64,000 bases of DNA from Macrostomum lignano (Eukaryota), in NCBI GenBank assembly GCA_002269645.1, contig NIVC01001000.1, positions 124,001 through 188,000 of the forward strand, read 5' to 3'. The position numbers and the translations under genes were made by a program. Each line of letters opens with the position of its first letter. The stretch's first letter is position 1. Shown piece by piece: positions 269 through 57,914 of this stretch. A model generated the notes under the pieces. It was not told the DNA's origin, searched no databases, and worked only from the letters and a program-made list of their open reading frames with translations.

Positions 269-506
269 TGGATATCGGATTAGCTTCCGAATGCATCACT
301 TTAAGAGAATTCAACAAAGTCCGAATATCATGAATAAAACGACAAAACAGCTGCTAAAGGATTCCGAGCACACTAAAGACCAAGACCGATTGTGCACGTC
401 GGCAATGACGGAGCGCCGCAAGGGTGAATATTCGCTACAGAAAGTGCAGTCGGAGTGCCACTTAAGATTGTTGACTTGATTGAATTTCTTGCCGCACACT
501 TTGCAC

Positions 507-1613
507 TCAAATGGCTTTTCTTGTGTGGAGCCTTGAGTGCCTGGTAAGATGGCTGCTGTCACTGAATCTCTTGCCGCACACTTTGCACTCAAATGGCTTT
601 TTTTGTCCTGTGTGCAGCCTTGAGTGCTTAGTGAGACAGCTGCTGACACTGAATCTCTTGCCGCACACTTTGCACTCAAACGGCTTTTCTCCTGTATGCT
701 GCCTTAAGTGCCTAGTCAGATGGCTGCTGTCACTGAATCTCTTGCCGCACACTTTGCACTCAAATGGCTTTTCTCCTGTGTGCTGCCTGGAGTGCTTAGT
801 GAGACAGCTGCCGTCACTGAATCTCTTGCCGCACACTTTGCACTCAAATGGCTTTTCTCCTGTATGCAGCCTTGAGTGCCTAGTGAGATGGCTGCTGTCA
901 CTGAATCTCTTGCCGCATACTTTGCACTCAAATGGCTTTTCTCCTGTATGCAGCCGTGAGTGCCTAGTGAGATGGCTGCTGTCACTGAATCTCTTGCCGC
1001 ATACTTTGCACTCAAATGGCTTTTCTCCTGTATGCAGCCTGGAGTGTGTAGTAAGATGACTGCTGACACTGAATATCTTGCCGCACACTTTGCACTCAAA
1101 TGGCTTTTCTCTTGTGTGCAGTCTGGAGTGTGTAGTAAGGCTGCTGCTGTCACTGAATCTCTTGCCGCACAACTTGCACTCAAATGGTCTCTCACCAGTG
1201 TGAGACCGGCTGTGCACGTGCAGATCGGGTTTCGCTGAGGACTTCCCACACCGCTTGCATTTGTGCGGTGTTGCCTTCCTGTGCACCACACTAATGTGAG
1301 CATTGAGATAGCTTCTCCTGGAGAACTTCTTTTGACAAGTGTCGCACTGGAACGGCTTCTGGAGACCCTGAGCACTATTTGTCACTGCACGACCGCCATC
1401 TGCACACGGCTGCATCGCTGACTCATTGCGAGACGCGACCTGCTCGACCGCCGCCGCTCTGCCAGCTTCTGAGTTGGTCGCAGCCGCCTCCTCAGGCTCC
1501 GAGTCGCGGCCAATTCCGTGTGACCGCACATGACGCAAGTACTGCGCCGCTGCCGGTCGGGTGCGGCAGAACCGCCTGGGACAAAACGGGCAGGCGACAG
1601 AGCCCCGGCGCAT
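507..1613 (-). CDS. Single-exon C2H2 zinc-finger protein, 368 aa: N-terminal atypical finger, 2 divergent fingers, 8 homogenised fingers (copy L1)
   Basis: Repeated CxxC-x12-HxxxH with TGEKPF linkers; ends HTRKAI*. No KRAB, SET, BTB or SCAN domain recognisable. Confidence 0.88.
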
Positions 1614-2474
1614 CTCTGAGAAACTGTGGGGCTACAATCCGTGCTGAGATGCCGATGCTCGAAGCCCGTCTCTGCCTTGAGCTGCAATGCGGAGCGATAG
1701 AGACTTCGTCACTTTGTCATCCAAGTTTGAATGACGTTCAAAGATTTTTAATCACGTATTGTCAGAAGATTCCGTTTAATTATAAAGATAGTTGGGTATT
1801 TTAGTATGGAGACAAAATATTTAAGCATTCGATTTGCATCTGAATGCATTGAGGTTCATATTGAAAGAACAAAGGCAATTTTTTTTTTCAATTATTTTTT
1901 CTACCCATGCACCGAATTTCACCAATGTACTTTTTTAAGACATTAGCATGTGAAATTTCTCTTACAATACGTATGAATATACTCGTATTATCATTAGCTG
2001 CAAAATTAACAAGACGAAATTGCTGACCCACGATTATATAACTGTAGTAGTCAGCATAGCAGCAGCAATTAAGCAATCATTTGTCACAAATGAAAAGACA
2101 CGAGACGATTAAAGGATTTGCTGCTATATGCACAAATAAATAACACACATGGATGAGTTTACGTTGCCTATTAAGTCATTAAAAAAGCAATTAAAATATC
2201 CTGGCAAACATTTAAACAAAACAATTAGTAAGGAAAACAAGTAAAATTTGAATGCCACCGGTGTAATTTATAAATACAGGGGAGAAAAGGTTCGATAACA
2301 ACGCTTGATTGCACAAAATTGAAACGCAAGTTAGGGAGTCAAAGGAAAATTTTAAGTGCTAAGTACTTCTACAATAAGCAATGAAATGATTGGGAAACAA
2401 TTGGATACCTTTGGCAGGAAACAAAGTAAAAAGCTGGTCTAGCAGTACAGTGTGCAGTATAATATATGCAGTGC

Positions 2475-2940
2475 CTACTGGTCATTGATTGCTGTCAGTG
2501 TCACTAACTGGTCATTGAGTGCTGTCACTAACTGGTCATTGAGTCCTGTCACTAACTGGTCATTGAGTGCTGTCACTAACTGGTCATTGAGTGCTGTCAC
2601 TAACTGGTCATTGAGTGCTGTCACTAACTGGTCATTGAGTGCTGTCACTAACTGGTCATTGAGTGCTGTCACTACCTGGTCTTTGAGTGCTGTCACTAAC
2701 TGGTCGTTGAGTGCTGTCACTAACTGGTCATTGAGTGCTGTCACTAACTGGTCATTGAGTGCTGTCACTAACTGGTCTTTGAGTGCTGTCACTAACTGGT
2801 CATTGAGTGCTGTCACTAACTGGTCATTGAGTGCTGCCACTAACTGGTCATTGAGTGCTGTCACTAACTGGTCATTGAGTGTTTTCATTAACTGGTCATT
2901 AAGTGCTGTCACTAACTGGCCATTAGGTTCTGTCACTAAT
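2475..2940. repeat. 24-bp minisatellite between ZF copies L1 and L2
   Basis: Same unit as 1-268. Confidence 0.95.
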
Positions 2941-3178
2941 TGGATATCGGATTAGCTTCCGAATGCATCACTTTAAGAGAATTCAACAAAGTCCGAATAT
3001 CATGAATAAAACGACAAAACAGCTGCTAAAGGATTCCGAGCACACTAAAGACCAAGACCGATTGTGCACGTCGGCAATGACGGAGCGCCGCAAGGGTGAA
3101 TATTCGCTACAGAAAGTGCAGTCGGAGTGCCACTTAAGATTGTTGACTTGATTGAATTTCTTGCCGCACACTTTGCAC

Positions 3179-4285
3179 TCAAATGGCTTTTCTTGTGTGG
3201 AGCCTTGAGTGCCTGGTAAGATGGCTGCTGTCACTGAATCTCTTGCCGCACACTTTGCACTCAAATGGCTTTTTTTGTCCTGTGTGCAGCCTTGAGTGCT
3301 TAGTGAGACAGCTGCTGACACTGAATCTCTTGCCGCACACTTTGCACTCAAACGGCTTTTCTCCTGTATGCTGCCTTAAGTGCCTAGTCAGATGGCTGCT
3401 GTCACTGAATCTCTTGCCGCACACTTTGCACTCAAATGGCTTTTCTCCTGTGTGCTGCCTGGAGTGCTTAGTGAGACAGCTGCCGTCACTGAATCTCTTG
3501 CCGCACACTTTGCACTCAAATGGCTTTTCTCCTGTATGCAGCCTTGAGTGCCTAGTGAGATGGCTGCTGTCACTGAATCTCTTGCCGCATACTTTGCACT
3601 CAAATGGCTTTTCTCCTGTATGCAGCCGTGAGTGCCTAGTGAGATGGCTGCTGTCACTGAATCTCTTGCCGCATACTTTGCACTCAAATGGCTTTTCTCC
3701 TGTATGCAGCCTGGAGTGTGTAGTAAGATGACTGCTGACACTGAATATCTTGCCGCACACTTTGCACTCAAATGGCTTTTCTCTTGTGTGCAGTCTGGAG
3801 TGTGTAGTAAGGCTGCTGCTGTCACTGAATCTCTTGCCGCACAACTTGCACTCAAATGGTCTCTCACCAGTGTGAGACCGGCTGTGCACGTGCAGATCGG
3901 GTTTCGCTGAGGACTTCCCACACCGCTTGCATTTGTGCGGTGTTGCCTTCCTGTGCACCACACTAATGTGAGCATTGAGATAGCTTCTCCTGGAGAACTT
4001 CTTTTGACAAGTGTCGCACTGGAACGGCTTCTGGAGACCCTGAGCACTATTTGTCACTGCACGACCGCCATCTGCACACGGCTGCATCGCTGACTCATTG
4101 CGAGACGCGACCTGCTCGACCGCCGCCGCTCTGCCAGCTTCTGAGTTGGTCGCAGCCGCCTCCTCAGGCTCCGAGTCGCGGCCAATTCCGTGTGACCGCA
4201 CATGACGCAAGTACTGCGCCGCTGCCGGTCGGGTGCGGCAGAACCGCCTGGGACAAAACGGGCAGGCGACAGAGCCCCGGCGCAT
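3179..4285 (-). CDS. C2H2 zinc-finger protein, copy L2 (same translation as L1)
   Basis: Identical 368-aa translation at offset 2672. Confidence 0.85.
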
Positions 4286-5146
4286 CTCTGAGAAACTGTG
4301 GGGCTACAATCCGTGCTGAGATGCCGATGCTCGAAGCCCGTCTCTGCCTTGAGCTGCAATGCGGAGCGATAGAGACTTCGTCACTTTGTCATCCAAGTTT
4401 GAATGACGTTCAAAGATTTTTAATCACGTATTGTCAGAAGATTCCGTTTAATTATAAAGATAGTTGGGTATTTTAGTATGGAGACAAAATATTTAAGCAT
4501 TCGATTTGCATCTGAATGCATTGAGGTTCATATTGAAAGAACAAAGGCAATTTTTTTTTTCAATTATTTTTTCTACCCATGCACCGAATTTCACCAATGT
4601 ACTTTTTTAAGACATTAGCATGTGAAATTTCTCTTACAATACGTATGAATATACTCGTATTATCATTAGCTGCAAAATTAACAAGACGAAATTGCTGACC
4701 CACGATTATATAACTGTAGTAGTCAGCATAGCAGCAGCAATTAAGCAATCATTTGTCACAAATGAAAAGACACGAGACGATTAAAGGATTTGCTGCTATA
4801 TGCACAAATAAATAACACACATGGATGAGTTTACGTTGCCTATTAAGTCATTAAAAAAGCAATTAAAATATCCTGGCAAACATTTAAACAAAACAATTAG
4901 TAAGGAAAACAAGTAAAATTTGAATGCCACCGGTGTAATTTATAAATACAGGGGAGAAAAGGTTCGATAACAACGCTTGATTGCACAAAATTGAAACGCA
5001 AGTTAGGGAGTCAAAGGAAAATTTTAAGTGCTAAGTACTTCTACAATAAGCAATGAAATGATTGGGAAACAATTGGATACCTTTGGCAGGAAACAAAGTA
5101 AAAAGCTGGTCTAGCAGTACAGTGTGCAGTATAATATATGCAGTGC

Positions 5147-6075
5147 CTACTGGTCATTGATTGCTGTCAGTGTCACTAACTGGTCATTGAGTGCTGTCAC
5201 TAACTGGTCATTGAGTCCTGTCACTAACTGGTCATTGAGTGCTGTCACTAACTGGTCATTGAGTGCTGTCACTAACTGGTCATTGAGTGCTGTCACTAAC
5301 TGGTCATTGAGTGCTGTCACTAACTGGTCATTGAGTGCTGTCACTACCTGGTCTTTGAGTGCTGTCACTAACTGGTCGTTGAGTGCTGTCACTAACTGGT
5401 CATTGAGTGCTGTCACTAACTGGTCATTGAGTGCTGTCACTAACTGGTCTTTGAGTGCTGTCACTAACTGGTCATTGAGTGCTGTCACTAACTGGTCATT
5501 GAGTGCTGTCACTAACTGGTCATTGAGTGCTGTCACTAACTGGTCATTGAGTGCTGTCACTAACTGGTCATTGAGTCCTGTCACTAAGTGGTAATTGAGT
5601 GCTGTCACTAACTGGTAATTGAGTGCTGTCACTAACTGGTCATTGAGTGCTGTCACTAACTGGTCATTGAGTGCTGTCTATAACTGGTCAATAAGTGCTG
5701 TCACTAACTGGTCATTGAGTGCTGTCACTAACTGGACATTGATTGCTATCCTAACTGGTCATTGAGTGCTGTCACTAACTGGTCATTGAGTGCTGTCACT
5801 AACTGGTCATTGAGTGCTGGCACTAACTGGTCATTGAGTGCTGTCAATAACTGGTCATTAAGTGCTGTCACTAACTGGTCATCAAGTGCTCTCACTAACT
5901 GGTCATTAAGTGCTGTCACTAACTGGTCATTAAGTGCTTTCACTAACTGGTCATCAAGTGCTGTCACTAACTAGTAATTGAGTGCTGTCACTAACTGGTC
6001 GAGTGCTGTCACTAAATGCTGTTACTTTGCACTTAGTAAGTGCTGTCACTAACTGGTCATTAGGTGCTGTCACTA
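5147..6075. repeat. 24-bp minisatellite, longest block
   Basis: Same unit; more degenerate toward 6075. Confidence 0.95.
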
Positions 6076-6093
6076 TATGGTTATTGGATTAGC

Positions 6094-8661
6094 TTACGAA
6101 TGCATCACTTTAAGAGAATTCAACAAAGTCCGAAGATCATGAATAAAACGACAAAAAGCTGCTAAGGGATTGCGAGCAAACACTTGGCGCACAATAAGGA
6201 CCAAGACAGATTGCTCACGTCGGCAATGACGGAGCGCCGCAAAGGTGAATATTCGCGACAGAAAGTGCTGCTCGGAGTGCTTTTTAAGATTGCTGATTTG
6301 ATTGAATCTCTTGCCACACATTTTGCACTAGAATATATAAATCTTTCAGGCTTTCTAGGGCAGAAAGGAGGAGAATCCGAGGGCCGCGAAGCTGGCCTGC
6401 TGGATTTGTATTCCTTCTTGATTTTGCGGGCGGACCGAGAAACGACATTCTTCGGCCCGCAAGTCAAGTCAAACTGCATTCGCTTCAGTCTAAGTTCAGT
6501 GCAAGTCCTGATTCTCGGCCCGCAAGAAAATGGAATTTGTCTATGGTACAAAATGCAAACTGTATTTCATTTTAGCTCGTAGTTCCGAGCCTAAAAGAGC
6601 GACTGACAAAGTATTAATTAGTCTAACTTTTTATTAAAATTTATTTAATTGACTCCTGACCCGAGCGTTCTGAGAAAATGATAGACTACTCCTGTATAGA
6701 AGGACGAGAGATTTCTGGGTTGCAGCGCGAAGAAATCGACTTTGTATGCCAACTCCGTGGCCGTGGGCGAATGTTCAATCGGTACACTGGCTTGCCTGTG
6801 CCTGGAATTGGATTCAGCAAGGCGCTCGAAAACGGCCTGTTGGATGCTCTAGTAAACGATCTTCTGCTGAAGTGAGCAGCGACAATCAACCCCGGAAGCT
6901 AACAAGTGATGAAGTGAGCGCCATTTTGGATGTGGAGAATGCCTCACGCGTCATCTCTACCGAAGCAAAAAGCCTAATCCAATCGTTAAACCAGTCACGA
7001 TCAAGCGATGTCCCACTTCAATCGCCTAGTTTTAGCGTTGAGCGTGGCAACCTAAAAGTATCTGCTGTTGACTGCGAACAAAGGGACTTTAATGGAGTTC
7101 TGCCGACTGCAGTGCTAGAGAAAAATAGATCCCGTGTTCTATTTTTCCTATAAGTGAGTACCTCTGAAAGCCACTTGGGCATTGAACTACCCTATGTACT
7201 GTAAAGACGGAGTGGGTTCCACCACAAGACTATATTAAATCGTTACTGTTGTCCTCTGTGTAATGTTGCGATTTTAACGTTTTAAATACAATCGTTTCGG
7301 CTTCGTCTATGGCCCAGCCCGATATCGGGCAGAGAATAGGCCGTTTCTTAAGCAGTCTTGCCCGCAAAATCAAGCAGGAATGGCTTTTCTCCTGTATGCA
7401 GCATCGAGTGTGTTGCGAGGTTGCTGCTGTCACTGAATCTCTTGCTGCACACTTTAAACTCAAATGGCTTTTCTCCTGTATGCAGCCTTAAGTGCCTAGT
7501 AAGATGGCTGCTGACACTGAATCTCTTGCCGCACACTTTGCACTCAAATGGCTTTTCTCCTGTGTGCAGCCTTGAGTGCCTAGTGAGATGGCTGCTGACA
7601 CTGAATCTCTTGCCGCACACTTTGCACTCAAATGACTTTTCTCCTGTGTGCTGCCTGGAGTGTGTAGTAAGGCTGCTGCTGACACTGAATCTCTTGCCGC
7701 ACACTTTGCACTCAAATGACTTTTCTCCTGTGTGCTGCCTGGAGTGTGTAGTAAGGCTGCTGCTGTCACTGAATCTCTTGCTGCACATTTTGCACTCAAA
7801 TGGCTTTTCTCCTGTGTGCAGCCTTAAGTGCCTAGTAAGATGGCTGCTGACACTGAATCTCTTGCCGCACACTTTGCACTCAAATGGCTTTTCTCCTGTG
7901 TGCAGCCTTGAGTGCCTAGTGAGATGGCTGCTGACACTGAATCTCTTGCCGCACACTTTGCACTCAAATGGCTTTTCTCCTGTATGCAGCCTGGAGTGTG
8001 TAGTAAGGCTGCTGCTGACACTGAATCTCTTGCCGCACACCTTGCACCCAAATGGCTTTTCTCCTGTATGCAGCCTGGAGTGTGTAGTAAGGCTGCTGCT
8101 GTCACTGAATCTCTTGCCGCACACTTTGCACCCAAATGGCTTTTCTCCTGTGTGCAGCCTGGAGTGTGTAGTAAGGCTGCTGCTGACACTGAATCTCTTG
8201 CCGCACACCTTGCACTCAAATGGTCTCTCACCAGTGTGAGACCGGCTGTGCACGTGCAGATCGCGTTTTGCTGAGAAGGACTTTTCACACCGCTTGCATT
8301 TGTGCGGTTTTGCCTTCCTGATGTTCCTGTGCACCACACTAATGTGAGCTTTGAGATAGCTTCTCCTGGAGAACTTCTTTTGACAAGTGTCGCACTGGAA
8401 CGGCTTCTGGAGACCCTGAGCACGATTTGTCACTGCACGACTGCCATCTGCACACGGCTGCATCGCTGACTCATTGCGAGACGCGACCTGCTCGACCGCC
8501 GCCGCTCTGCCAGCTTCTGAGTTGGTCGCAGCCGCCTCCTCAGGCTCCGAGTCGCGGCCAATTCCGTGTCACCGCACATGACGCAAGTACTGCGCCGCTG
8601 CCGGTCGGGTGCGGCAGAACCGCCTGGGACAAAACGGGCAGGCGACAGAGCCCCGGCGCAT
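6094..8661 (-). pseudogene. C2H2 zinc-finger gene copy L3, disrupted
   Basis: ATG at 8661. TCA>TGA at codon 31 (8569-8571). 10 homogenised fingers, the last with C>F (EFKVC). A ~1.05 kb insertion splits the last linker; the terminal finger and tail resume at 6094-6327. Confidence 0.85.
6328..7380 (-). mobile_element. Non-autonomous element with asymmetric inverted repeats (Helentron/Helitron2-like)
   Basis: Interrupts the KPF|ECK junction with no target duplication. A 21-bp inverted repeat (20/21 match) lies at 7360-7380 (terminal) and 6411-6431 (~80 bp internal). 14-bp palindrome GCCCGATATCGGGC at 7317-7330, hairpin at 6351-6367, CTAG at 6328-6331. Absent from the right arm. Confidence 0.55.
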
Positions 8662-9631: not shown

Positions 9632-12600
9632 TCAGGTGAGCTGACCCAATTCAGCCAGCTGTAGCAGGAACTGACACCCGGTCACCAGCTGGGTGCTGCC
9701 GTAGGTGATCCGCCTGCCACCGCCGCCGCTGCCGCCGCCGCCTCCGCCGGCGCCCGTAACGCCGGATGATTTTGAAGTTCGACGCAAATCAACCAGATTC
9801 TGATATTCAATATAGTTGCCGCCGCCAACTACGAATACGATCGCCTCCTGTTTGGTTTTGTTTCGTGGGTGACAAAATATGATACCAACGATATTAGAAC
9901 AGCGGCGGTGTTGAAGATGGAGAGAGGGACTTAGAGAGAGAGGGATATGGAGAGAGAGACGGAGAGAGAGATGGAGACAGAGGGATGGAGAGAGAGAGGT
10001 GGAGAGAGGGAGATGGAGAGAGGCAGATGGAGAGAGGGAGATGGAGAGAGAGAGGGAGTTGGAGAGAGGAGATGGAGAGAGATGGAGTTGGAGAGAGGGA
10101 GATGGAGAGAGGCAGATGGAGAGAGGGAGATGGAGAGAGAGAGGGAGAGAGATGGAGTTGGAGAGAGGAGATGGAGAGAGATGGAGTTGGAGAGAGGGAG
10201 ATGGAGAGAGGGAGATGGAGAGAGAGGGAGTTGGAGAGAGGAGATGGAGAGAGGCAGATGGAGAGAGGGAGATGGAGAGAGAGATGGAGTTGGAGAGAGG
10301 GAGATGGAGAGAGGCAGTTGGAGAGAGAGAGAGGGAGATGGAGAGAGAGATGGAGTTGGAGAGAGGGAGATGGAGAGAGGCAGTTGGAGAGAGAGAGGGA
10401 GATGCAGAGAGGGAGATGGGAGGGAGTGAGGGGGAGAGAGGGAGATGGAGAGAGAGATGGAGTTGGAGAGAGGGAGATGGAGAGAGGGAGATGGAGAGAG
10501 AGAGGGAGTTGGAGAGAGAGAGGGAGATGGGAGGGAGGGAGGGGGAGAGAGGGAACCAAGCAGAATATTGGGAGGGAGTTGGGAGACAGGAAGCAAAAGA
10601 GACAAAAAGAGAGAGATGAAGAGAGGAGATGAGATGAAGAGTAAAAGAACTAGGAGAAGAGGAGAGATGCAGACGGAAATTAGCCAAAAAGAAGGGAGCG
10701 GGAAGTGAAGAGGGGGGGGGGGGTAAATTTCTTACAAAGCAGACACCCGAGCACGACAAACCTGAAACGGCTGCTTCTGCCTAGGAATCTGAGACGGATC
10801 GGTCACCCGGTGCAGTTTCGGATCGAAGTAGCGATACTCTTCAACTTCGGCCTGGCCGGCCCGGTTCTCCATCAAACAGTCGGCAATGCGAGCGGCCGGC
10901 AGGTTGTGCTTCCTCAGCACCAGATTCCTTACGCCCTCCATCAGGAATGAGCCGCCCTTTGATAGGCCGCCTAGCCAGCCGCTGCCGCTGCCGGAAGCGC
11001 CGCTGCCGCCACTTCCGCCGCCAACGTAATAACTGCCGCCGCCGCTGAGAGCGCGCCATTTTCTTAGATAAGCGGCCGCTTTCAACAGACCGGCGCAGTC
11101 CACTAATCCGCCAGATTCGCTGCTCAGTGCGGCAGAAGGCTCGCTGGCTAAACGATTTAATTGGCTTAATAATTCATCCAATTCAGCGCCTGAGGCCTGC
11201 GGACAGTCGCTCAATACTGCTACTAATAGTAGGCGCAGCTTGTCTTCAAAACTGCCAGCCTCTGGATCGGCCAGCACGTCAACTAGGGGCCGATCTAGAC
11301 TCTGCTTAGCCAATAGTTTCTCTTCTAATTCGAATAGCAGATCCAATTGGCGAGCTTTGATTTTCTCTGCTAGACAGGTGGCAACATTAGTGTGCATGTC
11401 TAAACTGCGTTTCATTGCTAGCAGGGCTGGCAGGTCGGACATTGCGCTGTTTAACACGGACATTGTGTCCGTCACTGTTTTGTCATCTAGTTCGGCGTCG
11501 AAACCCATACTGCGTTTTAATCGGCCAACTTTCTCTTCCTCTTGTTTGTACTTTTCTAAATTGCGCTTGACAGCGTCAGCCACCTCGGGGAATGGGGCGC
11601 CGCGTTGGGCGGACCAGAAATTGTCTTCTTCTGCAAGAAGATCGTAGGCTGTTGTTCGTTTCTGTTGTTGCTGCTGGTGAGACGGCGGCCCAGACTGGGG
11701 TAGTTCGACTCGATTGAGGCGGGAGCCAAGTACATCGTGTACTAAAGCCTGGGGGATGAGATGGTAGATGGGGATAGCAGACCGGAAGTATGCAATATTT
11801 ACCAGATATTCAAGTGACTTCTATTGAAGTAGTAAATTAAACAATGAGATTAATCTACTGACTACAGCAAGTGAAATCTACTCGTACTGACGATCGGATG
11901 TGAAATCTACTGACTACCAGAAGTGATATATACTGACCACCGGAAGTGATATCTTCTGTCTACCGGAAGTGATATACCCACTGACTACCGGAAGTGATAT
12001 ACCCACTGACTACCGGAACTGATATACCCACTGACTACCGGAACTGATATACCCACTGACTACCGGAAGTGATATACCCACTGACTACCGGAAGTGTTAT
12101 CTACTGAGCACCGGAAGTGAAATATACCAATCAAAGGAAGTGATATTTACTGACTACCTGAAGTTGATAACTACTGACTACCGGAAGTTGATAACTACTG
12201 ACTACCTGAAGTTGATACCTACTGACTACCGGAAGTTGATAACTACTAACTACCGGAAGTTGATAACTACTAACTACCGGAAGTTGATAACTACTAACTA
12301 CCGAAAGTTGATAACTACTGAATACCGGAACTTGATAACTACTGACTACCGGAAATCGATAACTACTGACTACCGGAAGTTGATAACTACTGACTACCGG
12401 AAGTTGATAACTACTGACTACCGGAAGTTGATAACTACTGACTACCGGAAGTTGATAACTACTGACTACCGGAAGTGAAATCTACTTATCTACCAATCGC
12501 AAACCTGATAAGTCCACGGATGATGCAGCATAGTAGCCAAATCTAAACTGCGATCAAGCAGCAGCAGCAGCGGCCGTTGAAACGAATACTGAGCAGCGGA

Positions 12601-15600
12601 ATCGCCGCCACCAGTGAACAAACTGTTTCGAGCGTCACGCAGATTGTCGCGCAATTTTTTGTCCAACTTCGCCGCGACAGCTTCGGCCGCGTTGCCGGCA
12701 GGACAGCGGATCACCGGCACGGCGCCCAGGGTGACGCAAACGGAGAACAGGCCACCAGCGATCTCGTTGAGCATGGCTTCCATTGCTTCGTCGCTGCTGT
12801 CTGGCCGATTTAAAGCTTTGTAGGAGAGGCTATCGGCCGAGTGGTGACGCAATACGAATAGATCCTCTTCTAGGCAAATGAAATCCGTGTACTGGTCCAC
12901 TACCCGGCTGATTTGACCGACAGCGTTGCCGCCGATTGCCGCCTTGACGAAAGACGATAAATTATTGTTGGGTTTCCTTCACATAGATTCAACTTATTTC
13001 CCATAGAACCCCTTCGCGCATTCATTGGATCCTCTTCCGTATTCAATAGATCCTTTTCACGAATTCATTGGATCCTCTTCCCGTATTCAATAGATCCTTT
13101 TCACGAATTCATTGGATCCTCTTCCGTATTCAATAGATCCTTTTCACGAATTCATTGGATCCTCTTCCGTATTCAATAGATCCTTTTCACGAATTCATTG
13201 GATCCTCTTCCCGTATTCAATAGATCCTTTTCACGAATTCCATAGATCCCCTTCCTGTATCACCTAGATTCACTCCTGTATCCCTTAGATCCACTTCCTG
13301 TATCCCCTAGATTCCCTCCTGTATCCCCTAGATCCCTTCCTGAATTTCTCCTAGATCCCTTTCCTGTATCCCTTGGATCCCTTTCTGTATCCTCTAGATC
13401 CATTTCCTGTATCCTCTAGATCCATTTCCTGTATCCCCTAGATCCATTTCCTGTATCCCCTAGATCCCTACCTGTATCCTCTAGATCCCTTCCTGTATCC
13501 CCTCGATCCCCTTCCTGTATCCCCTAGATCCCTTTCCTGTATCCCCTCGATCCCCTTCCTGTATCCCCTAGATCCCTTTCGTGTATCCCTTAGATCCACT
13601 TCCTGTATCCCCTAGATCCCTTCCTGAATTTCTCCTAGATCCCTTTCCTGTATCCCCTGGGTCCCTTTCTGTATCCTCTAGATCCATTTCCTGTATCCCC
13701 TAGATCCCTTTCCTGTATCCCCTAGATCCATTTCCTGTATCCCCTAGATCCCTACCTGTATCCCCTAGATCCCTTCCTGTATCCTCTAGATCCCTTCCTG
13801 TATCCCCTCGATCCCCTTCCTGTATCCCCTAGATCCCTTTCCTGTATCCCCTCGATCCCCTTCCTGTATCCCCTAGATCCCTTTCGTGTATCCCTTAGAT
13901 CCACTTCCTGTATCCCCTAGATTCTCTCCTGTATCCCCTAGATCCCTTCCTGTATTTCTCCTAGATCCCTTTCCTGTATCCCTTGGATCCCTTTCCTGTA
14001 TCCCTTGGATCCCTTTCCTGTATCCCTTGGATCCCTTTCCTGTATCCCCTAGATTCTCTCCTGTATCCCCTAGATTCTCTCCTGTATCCCCTAGATCCCT
14101 TCCTGTATTTCTCCTAGATCCCTTTCCTGTATCCCTTGGATCCCTTTCCTGTATCCCCTAGATCCCTTCCTGTATTTCTCCTAGATCCACTTCCTGTATC
14201 CCCTAGATTCTCTCCTGTATCCCCTAGATCCCTTCCTGTATTTCTCCTAGATCCACTTCCTGTATCCCCTAGATTCTCTCCTGTATTCCCTAGATTCCTT
14301 CCTGTATTTCTCCTAGATCCCTTTCCTGTATCCCCTAGATCCCCTTCCCATATCCCTTAGATCCTCTTCGCGAATTCCATAGATCCCCTTACCCGTATCC
14401 CATAGATCTCCTTACTCGTATCCCATAGATCTCCTTACCCGTATCCCATAGATCCCCTTACCCGTATCCCATAGATCTCCTTACCAGTATCCCTTAGGTC
14501 CTCTTCCCTTATCCCCTAGATCCCAATTCAGTGTATGAGACCACCAACCTGAGCCAGATCCTCCAGCTTGCTCCTGGATATTTGCGATATGAAATTCAAA
14601 TGATAGGACTCGTATAATCCGGCAGCCAGATCGCGTCCCAAGCGTTGCAAATTCTCCTCGCTAGGATTCATAAAATACACGGCGGCAACGTCGGATAGCG
14701 GCTCGCGATCTGAGTGCAACGGCAGGTGCAACGTGACGCCCAGGTCGCGTAGATCTTTCACCGTGAGCAGCGGAGAGATCATGTCTTGACCGCTGCGATC
14801 GTAAATCAACACCTGACAGGTTTGCGGGGGAAATGATCAACAAGTACATTACTGGAATTACTGGAAGACAGGTAATAAAAAAAAATTTTTGGGACCGATT
14901 AAAGGCGATTCTTAAAGCGAGTGTCTCGAGAGGCGATTCTCAATGTGAGAGTCTCGAGAAGCGATTCTCAATGTGAGAGTCTCGAGAAGCGATTCTCAAT
15001 GTGAGAGTCTCGAGAAGCGATTCTCAATGTGAGAGTCTCGAGAAGCGATTCTCAATGTGAGAGTCTCGAGAAGCGATTCTCAATGTGAGAGTCTCGAGAA
15101 GCGATTCTCAATGTGAGAGTCTCGAGAAGCGATTCTCAATGTGAGAGTCTCGAGAAGCGATTCTCAATGTGAGAGTCTCGAGAAGCGATTCTCAATGTGA
15201 GAGTCTCGAGAAGCGATTCTCAATGTGAGAGTCTCGAGAAGCGATTCTCAATGCGAGAGTCTCGAGAAGCGATTCTCAATGTGAGGAGAGTCTCGAGAAG
15301 CGATTCTCAAGGTGAAAGTCTCGAGAAGAGATTCTCAAGTAAAGAGTCTCGAGAAGCGATTCTCAATGCGAGTCTCGAGAAGCGATTCTCAATGTGAGGA
15401 GAGTCTCGAGAAGCGATTCTCAATGTGAGGAGAGTCTCGAGAAGCGATTCTCAAGGTGAGACTAGAGTGCCTCGAGTGGCGATTCTCAAGCCTCAAGGTG
15501 CGTCCTAAATATAAACCTCATCAGTAAATCCAATGAGTCGATTTTTGTTGAAATAAGAGTCCAGAGCAGGTTCTCAAAGTCTCTAGTCTTTTAGGAAGAC

Positions 15601-15799: not shown

Positions 15800-15899
15800 T
15801 TTATTAGTCTAGTCGGGACCACGGAGCCTGATTGCAGACATAAAAATGACACGAATAATTTTAATAAGTATCAAACACAGAAATATTTACACTGTTAGC

Positions 15900-16180
15900 T
15901 ACTGACTACCGGATGTGATATATTCGCTGACTACCGGAAGTGATATCTACTGAGTACCGGATGTGATACATCCACCGACTACCGGAAGTGATATCTACTA
16001 ACTACCGGAAATGACATACCTAGTGACTACCGGAAGTGATATATCCTGCGACTACCGGAATTGATATATCCTGCGACTACCGGAAGTGATATCTACTGAC
16101 TACCGGATGAGATATATCCACTGACTACCGGAAGTGATATATCCATTGGCTACCGGAAGTGATATTTATTGACTACTCGA
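15900..16180. repeat. Degenerate 23-25-bp ACCGGAAGT-containing minisatellite between the MED19 stop and SCFD1 start
   Basis: Same family as the SCFD1 intron 3 repeat. Confidence 0.88.
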
Positions 16181-16515: not shown

Positions 16516-18791
16516 TCAAGTCCTCTCTTTTGTCTTTCGTTTTTTCTCCTTTTTTCGTTTCCTTTCGGCTTTCCGTTCGGCTTTATCAAATTTAGCGGCG
16601 GCGGCGGAAGCAGAGTTCAAGCACTGTCCAGCGGCCGCTGGTGACGAGGAAAATGCTGCTGTCGGCATGGCTGAAGACGCCGAAGCAGCGGAAGCAGCAG
16701 CAGCAGCAGCAACAACAGAAGCGGCAGCAGAGCTGGCCGATGGCAAAGGCTGCGGAGGCGGCAGCGGTGGAACGCCGGCGGCAAACCTGCTGATAGCCGG
16801 AGCGCCAGAAGCGACGCTCACGTGAGCAGCAGCGCTAGGAGCAGAAACTGGCTGAGCACTGGTCACGCCAACGCTACTAGAAGCAGCAGTTGATTGAGAA
16901 GCAGCAATAGTATTAGAGCTGGCACTGGTATTATCGCCTGGATTAGATTCGTTATGACTGCTGCCAATCAAATCTGTGATGACGGCTTCGTGACGACGCT
17001 TCCTAGTTCGACCTGGAGGCTGCTGAGACTGCTGAGACGATTGGGGAGTAGGTGGCTGCGGCTGCTGCTGTTGCTGCTGCTGGGGCGGCGGCTTGTTAAA
17101 CAACTGAGCCAGCTCAGGCGGCACGGGACCCTCGTGTAGACGAAAAGCGGACATGGCATTGGCCGATAGTGGGGCCAAATCTTTGCCAGTAACTGGCGGT
17201 CGCTCGATCATCTCGGACAGGGATGAGCCGTCTTCGAATCTGAAGAGAGATTTTAATGCAAATATAATATATTGAGTTGACAGTCCAACACCCATAAGTC
17301 ATTAGACACATGCATTAGCAATCAGCCTGACCCATTAATAATCAGTTTGACCCATTAAAAATCAGTCTGACCCATCAATAATCAGTTTGACCCACTAATC
17401 ATCAGTCTGACCCATTAATAATCAGTTTGATCCACTAATTATCAGTCTGGCCCATTAATAATCAGTCTGATCCACTAATTATCAGTCTGGCCCATTAATA
17501 ATCAGTTTGACCCATTAATAATAAGTCTGACACATGAACCAGTCTGACCCAATAATCAGTCTGACATATTAACCAGTCTGACCCAATTATCAGTCTGACC
17601 CATTAATCATCAGTCTGACCCACTAATCATCAGTCTGACCCACTAATCATCAGTCTGACCCATTAATAATCAGTCTGACCCATTAATAACCAGTCTGATC
17701 CACTAATCATCAGTCTGACCCATTAATAATCAGTCTGACCCATTAATAATCAGTCTGACCCACTAATCATCAGTCTGACCCATTAATAATCAGTCTGACC
17801 CATTAGTAACCAGTTTGACCCATTAATAATCAGTCTGACACATTAACCAGTCTGACCCAATAATCAGCCTGACCCATTAATTATCAGACTGACCCATTAA
17901 TAATCAGCCTGACCTATTAGCAATCAGCCTGACCTATTAGCAATCAGCCTGACCTATTAGCAATCAGCCTGACCTATTAGCAATCAGCCTGACCTGTTAG
18001 CAATCAGCCTGACCTGTTAGCAATCAGCCTGACCTGTTAGCAATCAGCCTTACCTATTAGCAATCAGCCTGACCTGTTAGCAATCAGCCTGACCTGTTAG
18101 CAATCAGCCTGACCTGTTAGCAATCAGCCTTACCTATTAGCAATCAGCCTGACCTATTAGCAATCAGCCTGACCTATTAGCAATCAGCCTGACCTATTAG
18201 CAATCAGCCTGACCTATTAGCAATCAGCCTGACCTGTTAGCAATCAGCCTGACCTGTTAGCAATCAGCCTTACCTATTAGCAATCAGCCTGACCTGTTAG
18301 CAATCAGCCTGACCTATTAGCAATCAGCCTGACCTGTTAGCAATCAGCCTGACCTGTTAGCAATCAGCCTGACCTGTTAGCAATCAGCCTGACCTATTAG
18401 CAATCAGCCTGACCTGTTAGCAATCAGCCTGACCTGTTAGCAATCAGCCTGACCTGTTAGCAATCAGCCTGACCTATTAGCAATCAGCCTGTGCCAAGAC
18501 TCACCCATTAGTATCAATCTGCCCAGGTAACCGAGGCAGAAAACACGACAGCTCCTCACGCAAACGCCTGGTACAGTACATAGAATAAGCCTGCTCAAGA
18601 TCGTGATGCTTGATCAAATTGGAAGCTCCAGTCAATGGCGCCTCCTGTGGCGGCTCCTTGCTCATGAGGTAGAATGGGTTACAGTGCGTGACAGAGGGCT
18701 TTTCGCCCAGCACAATTTTTATTCTAGGCGAAACAGATGCCTGAAGTTGCGCATTGGGAGGTTGCTGTTGTGGTTGTTGTTGTGCCTTCAT
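16516..18791 (-). CDS. MED19: Mediator subunit 19, 2 exons: 18791-18505, 17239-16516 (336 aa)
   Basis: PFYLM...LTGASNLIKHHDLEQAY...FLPxLPG and SSLSEMIERPP...AFRLHEGP match the Med19 core; Lys-rich tail; GT-AG phase-2 intron. Confidence 0.92.
17320..18492. repeat. Two related 20-bp minisatellites (CATTAATAATCAGTCTGACC; TATTAGCAATCAGCCTGACC) filling the MED19 intron
   Basis: Direct reading. Confidence 0.93.
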
Positions 18792-23593: not shown

Positions 23594-25420
23594 TAGGGCG
23601 CACACAGTAGACCCCTAGCGCGTAAGCGCTCGCAGAACAGGCAGGAGGAGCAGGCAGCTGCCTGAGGGGTCAGTGCAAGCGCCTGCAAGTCAGCAATGAG
23701 GCAGTCCGTCAGAGTGGCAGTGTGGGCCGGGCCGCGGCGCAGTTGCTCGGTTGACCGTTGCAGCAGAGCCTGAAGGACGGGCGCACCTACGGGCCCAGGG
23801 TTCGTAGGCAGTGGTGGCCCAGCAGCATCTGACGGCGCCAGCGGAGGGTAGCGCTGATAGGCGGGCGCTCCGGGTAGCGCACGCCCAGTGCGTAGCGCAG
23901 CAGCGATCGGTAAAGCGCGTCCAGGGCTCGCTCTCGCGTCTTGGTCAGCGGCACAGCCTCCATGCCGTACAGGAGGATCGGCTCGACGGCCACGCGGAAC
24001 AGACGCACCTTCAGGTCGTCTGTGGCAGCTGAATTGAAGACGTTCCTTTGCAGGTGCGCGGCGCGCCAGGCCTGGTTGCTCCTTGTCGGAGACAATCGCA
24101 TCGGGGTTCATAATAAGGGCACCGAGGTTCCGGAAGTCCTCGTGCACCGCGATGCGGTCTCCATTGGGCTGGGGTGGTATTCGTGCCCACGTGCAGCGCC
24201 TCCGTCTTGCGAGCGTTCACCAGCAGCCCAACGCGGGCACCCTCGTCGCAGAGCCTTGTGAGAGCGCACTGGGCTGCAGCAGGTTCGCGGCAAAGCAGCG
24301 CGATATCCTCAGCATATGCGAGAGCGGGAAGCGAAACAGCAGGGTGTCTGGAGCTTCGGCGTGAGACCAGCAAGTAGCTGTCGTCCTCGCAGAGGGACCG
24401 ACGGAGCACGTAATCCACAACCACGAGAAAGAGCAGAGGAGCCAGTGTGTCACCCTGAAGTACGCCTGAGCTGGTGCCGAACTCTTCTGTGGGGTCATCG
24501 CGCGAGATTACAAAAGCCCTGGAGTCGCGGTAGAGGTCCATCACAGTGATCACCAGCGCAGCAGGTACACCATAGTGAGATAAAAGCCACGCGATCGCAG
24601 GCCTGGACACCGAGTCAATCGCCTTACGAAAGTCGACGAAGATGATTGACACGGAGCGCTGGCGGCCGTCTTGCAGGCCTCGATGACAGAGCGGATGGTG
24701 GCAACCTGCTCGGTGGTGGACCTGCCCGGACGGAAGCCACTTTGGAGGCTCAGCAGCAGTGGGTTGAGGCCGGGCTAGGAGGCAGTTGATCAGAATTGTG
24801 TTCAGTGCAGCTTCGGCTTTGTGCATTCCAGAGCGATGCCCCGCTGGTTGTCCAGGCTGGTGGAGGCGCCTTTCTTCAGGATGAAGACAATCTTGGAGGT
24901 GCACATTGCTGAGGAGCTGAAGCGGTCTCGTTGCCTTCAAGGCTGCAGTGCTTTTTCAGCAGGCTGGTAATGATTGGGGTGAGCTCGGACAGCTTCAGGA
25001 CCCTGGGAGGGATGGCGTCCACCCCAGCGGCGGCGTCAGCTCGCATGATCTTCAGTGCTCGGCCAACCTCGCCCGAAGTGATGGGCCGGTGTTGAAGGCG
25101 CCTGGCTGGGCTGGAGCGAAGAGTCTGGGATTGGCAGAAGAGGCGCAGCTATAACGGGCGCGTTGAGCACCTCGCGGTAGTGAGTGGCCAGCAGGGCCTT
25201 GTGGTGCTCGTGGAATCAGCGCCGACGATGGTGTTGGGCTTGGGCTTCCTGCCAGTCAGCTGGTTGATGGCCGTCCTATGGCAGCACTATGGCGGCAGTT
25301 GTCAGTGGCAAGCGAGTTGGATTTCGCCCACAGCCTCTTCGATGAAGGCTTCAGTCCGCTGGGCGTGGATGCGCTGCAGCTCGTCCCTGGCAGCACTGGC
25401 CTGGTTGCTGTCATGGCTGT
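23594..25420 (-). mobile_element. 5'-truncated, frameshifted RTE/RTEX-like non-LTR retrotransposon
   Basis: RT motifs FVDFRKAIDSV, GVLQGDTLAPLLF and LAYAEDIALL (catalytic YADD changed to YAED); C-terminal LKVRLFR..VEPILLYGME segment in another frame; no endonuclease domain visible. Confidence 0.88.
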
Positions 25421-28164: not shown

Positions 28165-28420
28165 AATCTCTCTATCTCACTCAACACTCTCTCCATATCT
28201 TCTCCATATCTCACTCAACGCTCTCTCCATATCTCACTCAGCACTCTCTCCATCTCACTCAATGCTCTCTCCATATCTCACTCAGCACTCTCTCCATCTC
28301 ACTCAATGCTCTCTCCATATCTCACTCAGCACTCTCTACATATCTCACTCAGCACTCTCTCCATATCTCACTCAGCACTCCGTATCTCACTCAGTAGTCT
28401 CTCCATATCTCACTCAATAC
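28165..28420. repeat. ~21-23-bp minisatellite (CTCTCCATATCTCACTCAGCACT) next to ZC4H2 exon 3
   Basis: Direct reading. Confidence 0.9.
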
Positions 28421-29721
28421 TCTTTCTGTCTTCAGCCTGTTTTAACATCCTATATACATGTAATTCAATACTCGTAGTTATCAAAACAATATAAACAAAC
28501 AATAGATGCATATTATGCACAATTTTAGAAAACCATCGAGAGTTGTCCAACCCTCTTGCAGCATTCCTCAGACCAGCAGACGGAAAACCGGCCACCTAAG
28601 TTGCTGAGGAATTCAAAGACCGCATTGCAAGTTTGCCAGACTTTGGGAATCGAATTCTTCTTTTTTACATTTGGCCAGCGATCGTGACAGACAGCTGACA
28701 TCTCCTATTCACGCGGCTCTCGGCATTCTCCGCTATTTTCCGCACAAGAAAAAAAATTAGCCATTTTTTGCCAAGAGAAAAAAATCTATTCGATAAGGTT
28801 TAGCCGGACACCCACACTGCGCAGGAGTGTGCAAACAATTTGATCCTCAAGCCTGCATCCCTGTCTTATAGGTGTTTATTATTGCAGTCCTCCCCAAACC
28901 GAAACACCTTTGTTTTTTGGGGATTTTCGGGGAACCGTCGGCTGGCTTAGAACTCTCGGATTGCCTTGTTTGTCCAGCTTTTCTCCATACTTTCTCGGGC
29001 CCGCCGCCTCCCAATTTCAACGGTCAGGCACCGCCAAGTATAAAAGCCAAGTTGCTGGTCTGTTTGCTATATTTTTCCTAAAGACCTCCATGCGCATATA
29101 CGTATAGGGCCTCGATCGCAGTGGGTCAAGAATGAAACTGAAGATGCCAATCCCTGCACTCAGGCACTAATATGTGTGTAAAGCGAGCTTCAAGGGGGTT
29201 TCTATTGCTTATACAGAACTCAAAGACTGGAGATCATCAAGTCACTTTCTCAATATCGCTTCAAAAACCCTTTCAGACTTGAGACTGACTGACTCTCTTC
29301 GGAACTCCCCAGAACGTGTTGACACAGCGTAAACCAAGCTTATACCGCCGACTCAAGCCTTCTTCTCAACCTGATTAAACGATTCAGCTTTCTAATGGGA
29401 TTTACCGTATAATAGGAGTCTGAAACGATGATGAAGAAGAGATTCTGGACCTCCCCTCTTTTCTCCCACTCCTCGTTCTGTCTACAATATGGACCTGAGT
29501 GAGTTGAGCTCTTGAAACAATACTTGCTCACTGTCAAAGTTGACCTGTTTAAACAGATCGTTAAAAACTATAGCTAGAAATTGCTAGCAAAAATTTCACT
29601 ATTAAATAATGAGATGAAGATCTGGAGAAAGGGGAGCTGGAGGGGAACTGGAGAAATGAGGAACAGCGTTGGTGAGAGAAAAATGACTGACACAACTACA
29701 CAGTGTAGACACTTCTTACTG

Positions 29722-30583
29722 NNNNNNNNNNNNNNNNNNNNNNNNNNNNNNNNNNNNNNNNNNNNNNNNNNNNNNNNNNNNNNNNNNNNNNNNNNNNNNN
29801 NNNNNNNNNNNNNNNNNNNNNNNNNNNNNNNNNNNNNNNNNNNNNNNNNNNNNNNNNNNNNNNNNNNNNNNNNNNNNNNNNNNNNNNNNNNNNNNNNNNN
29901 NNNNNNNNNNNNNNNNNNNNNNNNNNNNNNNNNNNNNNNNNNNNNNNNNNNNNNNNNNNNNNNNNNNNNNNNNNNNNNNNNNNNNNNNNNNNNNNNNNNN
30001 NNNNNNNNNNNNNNNNNNNNNNNNNNNNNNNNNNNNNNNNNNNNNNNNNNNNNNNNNNNNNNNNNNNNNNNNNNNNNNNNNNNNNNNNNNNNNNNNNNNN
30101 NNNNNNNNNNNNNNNNNNNNNNNNNNNNNNNNNNNNNNNNNNNNNNNNNNNNNNNNNNNNNNNNNNNNNNNNNNNNNNNNNNNNNNNNNNNNNNNNNNNN
30201 NNNNNNNNNNNNNNNNNNNNNNNNNNNNNNNNNNNNNNNNNNNNNNNNNNNNNNNNNNNNNNNNNNNNNNNNNNNNNNNNNNNNNNNNNNNNNNNNNNNN
30301 NNNNNNNNNNNNNNNNNNNNNNNNNNNNNNNNNNNNNNNNNNNNNNNNNNNNNNNNNNNNNNNNNNNNNNNNNNNNNNNNNNNNNNNNNNNNNNNNNNNN
30401 NNNNNNNNNNNNNNNNNNNNNNNNNNNNNNNNNNNNNNNNNNNNNNNNNNNNNNNNNNNNNNNNNNNNNNNNNNNNNNNNNNNNNNNNNNNNNNNNNNNN
30501 NNNNNNNNNNNNNNNNNNNNNNNNNNNNNNNNNNNNNNNNNNNNNNNNNNNNNNNNNNNNNNNNNNNNNNNNNNNNNNNNNNN
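29722..30583. other. Assembly gap (862 N)
   Basis: Run of N directly at the inner end of the left arm. Confidence 1.
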
Positions 30584-31134
30584 CATGCAGTGCGTATTGA
30601 GCGAAACTGACAATTATGGAGGATTTTGAGTTTTTTTCTGCATCGTGTGCAGCTTTCTCTCAGTGCAGCTTCTCAATGAGGATCGAGTGCATTGGTATAA
30701 TAGATGATTGATCAGCTAATGACGATATAATTGCTCTTGCTCAAGGAGGCTCAAACATCTTCTTCACGTTTGACTCGAATTGTTGTCAATCTTCACTTTT
30801 TGACCGAGGCTCAGCAATATAACTCTGATGATGGATGATGAGAATTGAAGAGCAGGTGCTCAGAGCGAAGACAGACTTGTTTACAGTAGCTCTGAAGATA
30901 TGCACTCAATGCCTATTGGAGATGAGTAGATGGCGGCACCTGACCCCCTAGAATTGAGACGCGGAGGATAACGCCTCCTTCAAAAAAGCGCTCAGCTGCA
31001 GTGGGGAAGTTCCAGTCAAAATTTCATTTGTTTAAAGCTTTTAAAAACCACATGCAGTCCGAGGAGCCTCTCTATCAGGCCCTCGGGTCCTTTAAAACTT
31101 CACAATAGCAATCCGCCCCTACTCAGCTCCGCCC

Positions 31135-31905
31135 CTACTTGTGTCTCTACTCAGCTCTCTTCTCTTTTCTCGCCTCTTCAATCCCTTCTCTCTCCGATCT
31201 CTCTCTCCTCTCGTCTCTCGTCTCTCCTCTCCAGTTTCGCCTATCCTCTCTCCTCTCATCTCTCCTCTCCAGTTTCGCCTATCCTCTCTCCTCTCTCCTC
31301 TGTCCTCTCCTCTCTAGTTTCGCCTATCCTCTCTCTCTCTCATCTCTCCTCTCCAGTTTCGCCTATCCTCTCTCCTCTCTCCTCTGTCCTCTCCTCTCCA
31401 GTTTCGCCTATCCTCTCTCCTCTCATCTCTCCTCTCCAGTTTCGCCTATCCCTCTCCTCTCTCCTCTCTCCTCTCTCCTCTCTCCTCTCTCCTCTCTCCT
31501 CTCTCCTTTCTCCTTTCTCCTCTCTCCTCTCTCCTCTCTCCTTTCTCCTCTCTCCTCTCTCCTCTCTCCTCTCTCCCCTCTTCTCTCTCCCTCTCCTCTT
31601 CCCTCTTTCGTATCCTCTCTCCTCTCTCCTTCTCCTCTCTCCTCTCTCCTCTCTCCTCTCTCCCTCTTTCGTATCCTCTCTCCTCTCTCCTCTCTCCCCT
31701 CTTTCGTATCCTCTCTCCTCTCTCCTCTCTCTCTTATCTCTCCTCTCTCCTCTCTCCTCTGTCCTCTCTCCTCTCTCCCCTCTCTCTCTCTCTCTCTCTC
31801 GTCTCTCCCCTACTTCGTATCCTCTCTCTTCTCTTCTCTTTTATCCACTCGCCTCTCCTTTCTCCTATCTCTCTTCTCTCTTCCCTTCTTCCCTCTCGCT
31901 CTTCT
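31135..31905. repeat. CT-rich polypyrimidine simple repeat
   Basis: Direct reading. Confidence 0.93.
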
Positions 31906-32050
31906 CTCCCTTCGGGCCCGCAGTGATGTGCTAGATTCTTTATCCGGCCTTTGAGGTAAAGATTTTGCCGACCCCTGCTGTTACTCAAATAAAAATATCA
32001 AAGAAACTTCTCTGTAAAAATGAACTTTTTTGTATTTTTGCATCTTTCAG

Positions 32051-57668: not shown

Positions 57669-57914
57669 GTGCAAAGTGTGCGGCAAGAAATTCAATCAAG
57701 TCAAGAATCTTAAGTAGCACTCCGACTGCACTTTCTGTAGCGAATATTCACCCTTGCGGCGCTCCGTCATTGCCGACGTGCACAATCGGTCTTGGTCTTT
57801 AGTGTGCTCGCAATCCTTTAGCAGCTGTTTTGTCGTTTTATTCATGATCTTCGGACTTTGTTGAATTCTCTTAAAGCATTCGGAAGCTAATCCAATATCC
57901 AATTAAAGACAGCA

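Follow-up and report, generated by a model that had tools for sequence, protein, structure and literature searches.

Six related zinc finger genes on the arms of a palindrome

We analyzed a 64-kb stretch of the Macrostomum lignano genome (contig NIVC01001000.1, positions 124,001 to 188,000, hereafter the window, numbered from its first nucleotide) that carries a cluster of tandem, single-exon C2H2 zinc finger genes. A listing of open reading frames (ORFs) combined with six-frame translation revealed six related genes, three toward the left end (L1, L2, and L3) and three toward the right end (R1, R2, and R3) (Table 1). An initial annotation of the sequence had placed six copies with 84-bp finger repeats at these positions, and both the ORF calls and Tandem Repeats Finder agreed with it, the latter detecting in each gene an array with a period of 84 bp and 89 to 92% matches, together with additional periods of 252/253 bp. 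Each gene is built in the same order: the N terminus is an atypical finger, next come ~50 disordered, acidic residues and two anchor fingers that are fixed, and an array of 3 to 10 near-identical fingers completes the protein. The L1 protein matched the Pfam models zf-C2H2 (2.4e-52) and zf-H2C2_2 (2.7e-69), as expected of a Krueppel-type tandem C2H2 protein, and a regular-expression scan of the window listed 46 fingers. The window is organized as one palindrome whose arms bear three copies each, in the mirror pairs L3/R1, L2/R2, and L1/R3.

Among the six copies, only L1, L2, and R1 have kept the full ORF of 368 amino acids (aa). The other three (L3, R2, and R3) are truncated; about half of the copies in the cluster are damaged. 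The premature stop of L3 leaves an ORF of 371 aa starting at Met67, and the 3' end of this gene is unlike that of the other copies and lacks their HTRKAI stop. The 228-aa ORF of R2 ends with the normal C terminus of the family and is followed by three out-of-frame fingers at 59942-60196. An extra Ser codon is present in finger 6 of R3 and likewise in finger 4 of R2, and the second anchor finger of L1 and L2 is devoid of the conserved core Phe as the result of a 3-bp deletion.

The initial annotation counted six gene copies, and six are present, but L1 and L2 are one sequence found twice, so that the cluster comprises five distinct genes, and the left and right groups are the arms of a palindrome. 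We found no mismatch when positions 107-2836 were compared with the same stretch shifted by 2672 bp (2779-5508), which corresponds to 100% identity over 2730 bp; the two 2672-bp units differ only in the copy number of a 24-bp minisatellite. Judged by sequence, this identity may mean that the unit was duplicated in tandem very recently or that it was duplicated during assembly. Over the whole cluster, the tandem repeat units measure 2.4 to 4.4 kb. The regular end of the proteins, HTRKAI followed by a stop codon, is created by a 2-nucleotide (nt) deletion in the TGEKP linker of the last unit. Because a diverged paralogue elsewhere in the genome ends likewise (HRRKAI-stop), we consider this end to be an old and genuine C terminus.

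Finger units differ mainly at DNA-contacting positions

Helix positions -1, +3, and +6 are the main base-contacting residues of C2H2 fingers. We aligned the 40 distinct 84-bp units of the cluster, leaving out L2 as a duplicate, and the finger scan reproduced exactly all of the (-1,+3,+6) strings that had been read initially (Table 1). Amino acid entropy was highest at +3 (1.44 bits), -1 (1.43 bits), and +6 (1.22 bits), followed by +8 (0.92 bits) and +10 (0.77 bits), and the same three codons ranked first for nonsynonymous diversity. By chance, the three canonical contact codons would occupy the first three ranks among 28 codons with a probability of 1/3276. Nonsynonymous diversity per site was ninefold higher at the contact codons than elsewhere (0.315 versus 0.035), the excess that the initial annotation implied. 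At the other helix positions, -2 and +2 were invariant and +1 was S in 38/40 units, +4 was L in 38/40, and +5 was T in 39/40, which matches the earlier description of -2, +2, +4, and +5 as almost fixed. That the units are nearly identical except at -1, +3, and +6 is accurate as far as the three most variable codons are concerned, but positions +8 and +10 vary too. Rare variants also affected structural residues (C3F, E2-stop, F1Y, and an extra Ser in the helix).

Positions -1, +2, +3, and +6 together accounted for a proportion of 0.39 to 0.52 of the amino acid diversity of each array, versus 0.14 under uniformity. This share and the entropy ranking both support the view that the arrays are a PRDM9-style coding minisatellite with diversity at contact residues. 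Of the two breaks indicated initially within arrays, the one in R3 proved to be a TAG stop and not a frameshift, and the one in R2 corresponds to a second terminal unit, complete with the 2-nt deletion in the linker, that lies inside the array.

A crude recognition-code pattern for L1, which is (GGC)n-like, matched only coding runs of GGC/GCN triplets and was not used as a target. The pattern exactly matches a GGC-rich poly-Gly run in the adjacent Sec1-family exon, at 9725-9748(-) and 55496-55519(+), probably as a trivial outcome of its degenerate, G-rich nature.

Arrays change by reshuffling of preexisting units

For the L3/R1 mirror pair, mismatches affected 0.8 to 0.9% of bases in the single-copy flanks and 2.1% in the 5' portion of the coding sequence, rising to 4.6% in the part of the unit that lies upstream and to 8.6% in the eight array fingers that are in register. 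The arrays have thus changed about ten times faster than their flanks, in keeping with the term fast-evolving used in the initial annotation. The proportion of synonymous differences (pS) between L3 and R1 was 0.17 in the array versus 0.0085 in the flanks. Since synonymous divergence is likewise high, the excess in the array does not represent new mutations fixed by selection, and we reject classical positive selection at contact sites as the main driver. The comparison indicates that the arrays change by the swapping of units for other units that already existed.

Several features of the units point in the same direction. Units of identical sequence are found at nonequivalent array positions of different genes (L3.7 = R1.4, L3.1 = R3.1, R2.4 = R3.6, and R2.6 = R3.8) and within one gene (L3.4 = L3.8), and one paralogue contains five identical fingers in a row. 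The terminal unit in the middle of the R2 array and the duplicated four-unit block of L3 also point to reshuffling. Four unit types, VHR, DHR, VST, and DST, make up 30/40 units. The helices of the S..T and H..R types are distinguished by multinucleotide codon changes (AGC/CAT and ACA/AGG) with linked synonymous differences (CTT/CTC and TCC/TCA), a pattern indicating that these four are old unit types that have been shuffled. The initial description of arrays diversifying at contact residues is therefore overstated if it is taken to mean new mutation under positive selection, as most of the change is shuffling of the four old types.

The N terminus contains no recognizable effector domain

Pfam searches with L1, R1, and the N-terminal 86 aa returned C2H2-type models only, and the best match of the N terminus itself was weak (zf-C2H2_4, E = 0.007). 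In these three queries, no PR/SET domain was detected at E<=1, and neither KRAB (PF01352), the A-box of which recruits TRIM28, nor SSXRD gave a match. The zf-AD domain (PF07776) was not matched either, and the structural model described below shows a beta-beta-alpha finger followed by disorder rather than a ZAD fold. Seven codons 5' of the ATG, an in-frame TAG closely follows an acceptor-like ttgcag site. As this stop precedes the ATG in frame, no upstream coding exon is possible, which rules out a hidden KRAB or other effector exon. The original assessment of the family as having no KRAB and no recognizable effector domain is therefore upheld by the Pfam matches and by the upstream stop, and the profile search of the N terminus that it had suggested, run here on 86 aa, recognized nothing beyond the weak finger match. 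An AlphaFold model computed from a seven-sequence alignment had a mean predicted local distance difference test score (pLDDT) of 58 and predicted a beta-beta-alpha finger at residues 1-33 (pLDDT 67-79), disorder at residues 35-84, and then the two anchor fingers.

The window genes belong to a family known only from M. lignano

R1 is 99% identical to the M. lignano protein A0A1I8HQT3 in UniProt, which carries the R1 array. The closest database proteins are M. lignano hypothetical models named BOX15_Mlig, with 70 to 75% identity; over the first 143 aa, identity to BOX15_Mlig034400g1, 007302g21, 011269g1, and 014837g1 reached 77 to 84%, and the N terminus and the anchor finger that follows share invariant columns with these four proteins. 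A word-indexed search with the 86-aa N terminus gave no hit despite the existence of paralogues that share it, and we used an exhaustive phmmer search instead. Across 1.84 billion representative proteins, this search produced 8 hits, of which 6 were from M. lignano and the remaining two were unrelated repetitive proteins that we consider spurious. Exact-protein look-ups of L1 and R1 in public assemblies gave no match, and a literature search found no paper describing the family. By sequence comparison, the window genes belong to an unnamed M. lignano family that is present in databases as hypothetical proteins and whose N terminus is known only from this species.

The paralogues led us to four other loci of the Mlig_3_7 assembly (L001 to L004) with 20 further N termini, in clusters of 2 to 8 copies that are always arranged head to tail on one strand. 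These N termini are 84 to 92% identical to those of the window, and about half of the paralogues are truncated. One of them, L001_10064, ends in HRRKAI-stop with a relic finger behind it, and other paralogues end in HIV-stop or HTNI-stop. We also observed that L002 (NIVC01004840.1) and L003 (NIVC01002369.1) hold near-identical copies of a cluster, including identical 415-aa ORFs, an illustration at the sequence level of the redundancy of Mlig_3_7. The GenBank gene models of Mlig_3_7 derive from transcript assembly of RNA sequencing (RNA-seq) data (PMC5730564), and since the models rest on transcripts, the paralogues are transcribed. Wells et al. 2023 (PMC10547256) list Mlig_3_7 in a supplementary table with the counts 362 and 9962, presumably those of zinc finger and transposon ORFs.

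Between the window cluster and the other clusters, the ratio of nonsynonymous to synonymous substitution rates (dN/dS) was 0.35 to 0.5 at a dS of 0.25 to 0.39, which indicates that weak purifying selection has acted on the family over the long term. Among the window copies, we detected no such constraint, which fits birth-and-death turnover, although power is low at a divergence of 1 to 3%. As a separate observation, the first 47 codons (1473-1613(-), the same part of the other copies, and L001 to L004) showed a between-cluster dS of only 0.06 to 0.15, versus 0.25 to 0.39 for the whole 5' part, and upstream DNA is ~25% diverged between clusters. This conservation could be due to a gene-conversion tract or to constraint on the nucleotides themselves.

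The palindrome and its other features

The palindrome arms extend over ~22 to 30 kb. Their identity is 99.6 to 100% near the center, with 100% over several kilobases, and 94 to 99% further out, and the 4.1-kb spacer between them (30584-34696) is not self-complementary. The palindrome may be either a true inverted duplication or a scaffolding join. ORFs in the segment that replaces the normal 3' end of L3 had no Pfam match. A 24-bp minisatellite follows each gene unit; we sought it beside the L001 to L004 clusters, where it was absent and other minisatellites were found instead, and we dropped the idea that it might be a gene-specific partner repeat.

Besides the zinc finger genes, the arms bear the last exon of a Sec1-family gene (Pfam Sec1, 5e-10) at 9632-10000(-), a Med19 exon (Pfam, 3.4e-12) at 16516-17295(-), and a retroelement reverse-transcriptase ORF (RVT_1, 2.8e-11) at 24011-24940(-), each with its mirror on the right arm. 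The window also displays an unusually dense set of distinct minisatellites with periods of 14 to 44 bp, most of which are mirrored on the other arm with other copy numbers. This density fits the share of tandem repeats in the M. lignano genome, which is reported to be ~15%. An Rfam scan of the whole window returned nothing at gathering thresholds.

Table 1. Coordinates and composition of the features of the window
Feature	Position	Strand	Description
L1	507-1613	-	Uninterrupted single-exon ORF, 368 aa; N-terminal atypical finger, acidic linker, 2 anchor and 8 array fingers
L2	3179-4285	-	Exact duplicate of L1, full 368-aa ORF kept
L3	7348-8661	-	10 array fingers, one 4-unit block duplicated; TGA at codon 31 (8569-8571)
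R1	56562-57668	+	Uninterrupted 368-aa ORF; mirror partner of L3
R2	59260-59946	+	228-aa ORF closed by a terminal-type unit within the array, after three array fingers
R3	61621-62730	+	TAG in array finger 4 (62308-62310); array otherwise unbroken
L1 array (-1,+3,+6)	510-1184	-	8 x 84 bp: DST, VHT, DHR, DHR, DCK, DHR, VCK, DHR; last unit with 2-nt linker deletion
L3 array (-1,+3,+6)			VST, DST, VST, VHR, VHR, DST, VST, VHR, VHR, DNT
R1 array (-1,+3,+6)			IST, DNT, FST, VST, VHR, VSR, VHR, DHR
R2 array (-1,+3,+6)			VST, DHR, IHR, then break (terminal-type unit), VHR, DHR, VHR
R3 array (-1,+3,+6)			VST, VHR, VST, then break (TAG stop), DST, IHR, VHR, DHR, VHR
Decayed extra finger	445-511	-	Out of frame behind the L1 stop; same relic behind L2, R1, R2, R3, and the L001 paralogue
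L3 relic finger	6265-6333	-	Set apart from the L3 array by the segment 6330-7378
Single-occurrence segment	6330-7378		1049 bp; between the L3 array and the L3 relic finger, replaces the normal L3 3' end
24-bp minisatellite	1-271; 2499-2943; 5171-6085; 57908-58367; 60439-60754; 62970-63309		After each gene unit
Palindrome left arm	7518-29721		Mirrors 57694-34697
Palindrome right arm	34697-57694		
Scaffold gap	29722-30583		862 N, exactly at the inner end of the left arm
Other minisatellites	9915-10554; 11885-12476; 13013-14524; 14905-15461; 15899-16176; 17313-18491; 28201-28423; 31155-31908; 32384-33073; 33704-34300		

Interpretation and alternatives

We favor, with good though not full confidence, the interpretation that the window contains a tandem, single-exon C2H2 gene cluster specific to M. 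lignano and lying on both arms of an inverted duplication, that the arrays of these genes have been reshuffled, and that the intact proteins bind DNA. Units within and between copies undergo unequal exchange and gene conversion, and the arrays change as these processes draw on a limited stock of existing unit types, most of whose differences lie at -1, +3, and +6. From what is known of C2H2 fingers, each rearrangement would alter the predicted DNA target of the encoded protein. New copies arise through tandem duplication, and copies are lost through stops and deletions. The intact proteins are presumably sequence-specific DNA binders, with the N terminus, acidic and bearing the atypical finger, as their protein-interaction end. 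By analogy with the KRAB, FiNZ, and ZAD families, we propose that their most likely targets would be repeated DNA, such as transposons or the minisatellites that are very abundant in this genome.

Several points weigh against this interpretation. The truncation of three of the six copies, together with the damaged anchor finger of L1 and L2, means that the window cluster may be largely nonfunctional. No ORF of the window is on record as a called gene, transcription is indicated for paralogues only, and the function of the six window copies is predicted from sequence. In the non-array part of the window copies, the ratio of the proportion of nonsynonymous differences (pN) to pS is near 1, with ~16 nonsynonymous versus 4 synonymous variable codons. 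At the contact sites, pN exceeds neighboring or pooled pS modestly (1.2- to 1.6-fold), which is suggestive of selection favoring diversity but not decisive, and position -1 is occupied mostly by V, I, or F, residues that read bases poorly. Finally, the repeat-targeting role is proposed by analogy alone.

A rival explanation is that of a decaying pseudogene macrosatellite, in which the window copies are nonfunctional and the pattern at -1, +3, and +6 was inherited from a functional ancestor and shuffled neutrally. We regard this explanation as possible but doubtful. It accounts for the ratio near 1 outside the arrays, the stops in L3 and R3, the lost core Phe of L1 and L2, the variants at structural residues, the truncation of about half of the paralogues elsewhere, and the lack of a called gene at the locus. 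It is at odds with the 368-aa ORFs maintained in L1, L2, and R1, with the normal family C terminus of the 228-aa ORF of R2, with the between-cluster dN/dS, which indicates that the family has been constrained, and with the transcript-based gene models of paralogues; moreover, the ratio of pN to pS has little power at the local divergence of 1 to 3%.

A second explanation concerns the arrangement of the copies rather than the genes. The palindrome and the perfect L1/L2 duplicate might have arisen from the assembling or scaffolding of near-identical haplotypes or homeologues from a highly redundant genome, in which case there would be fewer real loci. In favor of this explanation are the scaffold gap where the left arm ends on its inner side, the complete identity of L1 and L2 over 2.7 kb, and A0A1I8HQT3, which joins L1-type and R1-type N termini on one strand, unlike the arrangement in the window. 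In addition, Mlig_3_7 contains 180 Mb of duplicated nonrepetitive blocks and its source line has extra chromosomes (PMC5730564), which also fits an artifact. Nevertheless, we consider it unlikely, since the arms differ in array content, in minisatellite lengths, and at 0.8 to 5% of bases, and so do not represent one read set folded back, and since the stops arose by substitution and several copies share the indels that change the frame, unlike random long-read errors. The observations made on the fingers are, in any case, independent of how the copies are arranged.

A role as PRDM9-like designators of meiotic recombination sites, for which array architecture is the only argument, is very unlikely, because SET, KRAB, and SSXRD are absent, with no possible upstream exon to supply them, and because the genes form a multicopy family with many pseudogenes.

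Going beyond the favored interpretation of a reshuffled cluster of DNA-binding proteins, Macrostomum might have independently evolved a repeat-silencing zinc finger system parallel to tetrapod KRAB and cyprinid FiNZ genes. In such a system, the N-terminal finger and acidic tail would be a new effector or recruitment module, and the minisatellite would allow retargeting to new transposons or satellites within very few generations. We offer this as a speculation and think it rather improbable.

Comparison with known systems

PRDM9 occurs in vertebrates and cnidarians. Like PRDM9, the window genes carry an 84-bp coding minisatellite with units that are ~90% identical and diversity concentrated at -1, +3, and +6, and form new arrays through the reshuffling of units and changes in their number. 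Unlike PRDM9, they have no PR/SET, KRAB, or SSXRD domain, make up a multicopy tandem family with pseudogenes rather than a single gene, and are invariant at +2. The contact-residue diversity proportion of full-length PRDM9 is reported to be 0.29 to 1.0, a range that includes the values of the window arrays, but partial PRDM9 forms, which are not thought to direct hotspots, show similar values, up to 0.52 to 0.78 (preprint, 10.64898/2026.09.07.749791).

Tandem organization, lineage-specific expansion, birth-and-death evolution, TGEKP-linked arrays, and variable contact residues are all shared with the KRAB zinc finger clusters of tetrapods, from which the window family is set apart by the absence of a KRAB domain, by its single-exon genes, and by arrays that are far more homogenized. 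Cyprinid FiNZ genes (Wells et al. 2023, PMC10547256) and insect ZAD genes likewise combine a clade-restricted N terminus with a tandem finger array in many clustered copies. The N terminus of the window family is unrelated to theirs and consists of an atypical finger and a disordered stretch instead of a folded effector domain, and the family is seemingly small, with tens of copies. As regards FiNZ, this is inferred from the phmmer search of the 86-aa N terminus, which returned only M. lignano and the two spurious repeat proteins, and was done without a FiNZ profile.

The cluster also resembles ORF-bearing macrosatellites such as D4Z4/DUX4, which have kilobase-sized tandem units with a complete intronless transcription factor ORF and undergo concerted evolution within the array. 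It differs from them in having few units per arm (at least 3), in encoding another class of protein, and in that each unit contains a coding minisatellite inside and a noncoding 24-bp minisatellite. On the basis of these sequence comparisons, the arrays of the window family are PRDM9-like in architecture, and the family is KRAB-, FiNZ-, and ZAD-like in genomic behavior and a member of none of these groups.

Implications

To our knowledge, flatworms have received hardly any attention with regard to fast-evolving tandem zinc finger families, which have been studied extensively in vertebrates and in insects. The present cluster displays the PRDM9 style of array evolution in a multicopy family without any effector domain. 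The pattern is one that could be expected from known metazoan zinc finger genes and is not unprecedented, and we judge its practical usefulness to be moderate. What is new and most useful is the contrast between flanks and arrays inside the palindrome, which serves as a built-in clock: a single pair of genes has diverged by <1% in the flanks and by nearly 9% in the array, which measures the speed of reshuffling against that of point mutation. With its very repeat-rich genome and its amenability to transgenesis and RNA interference, the laboratory model M. lignano could serve for testing whether families of this kind keep repeats in check. If an independent repeat-silencing system did evolve in Macrostomum, it would provide a tractable invertebrate model of the arms race between zinc fingers and repeats.

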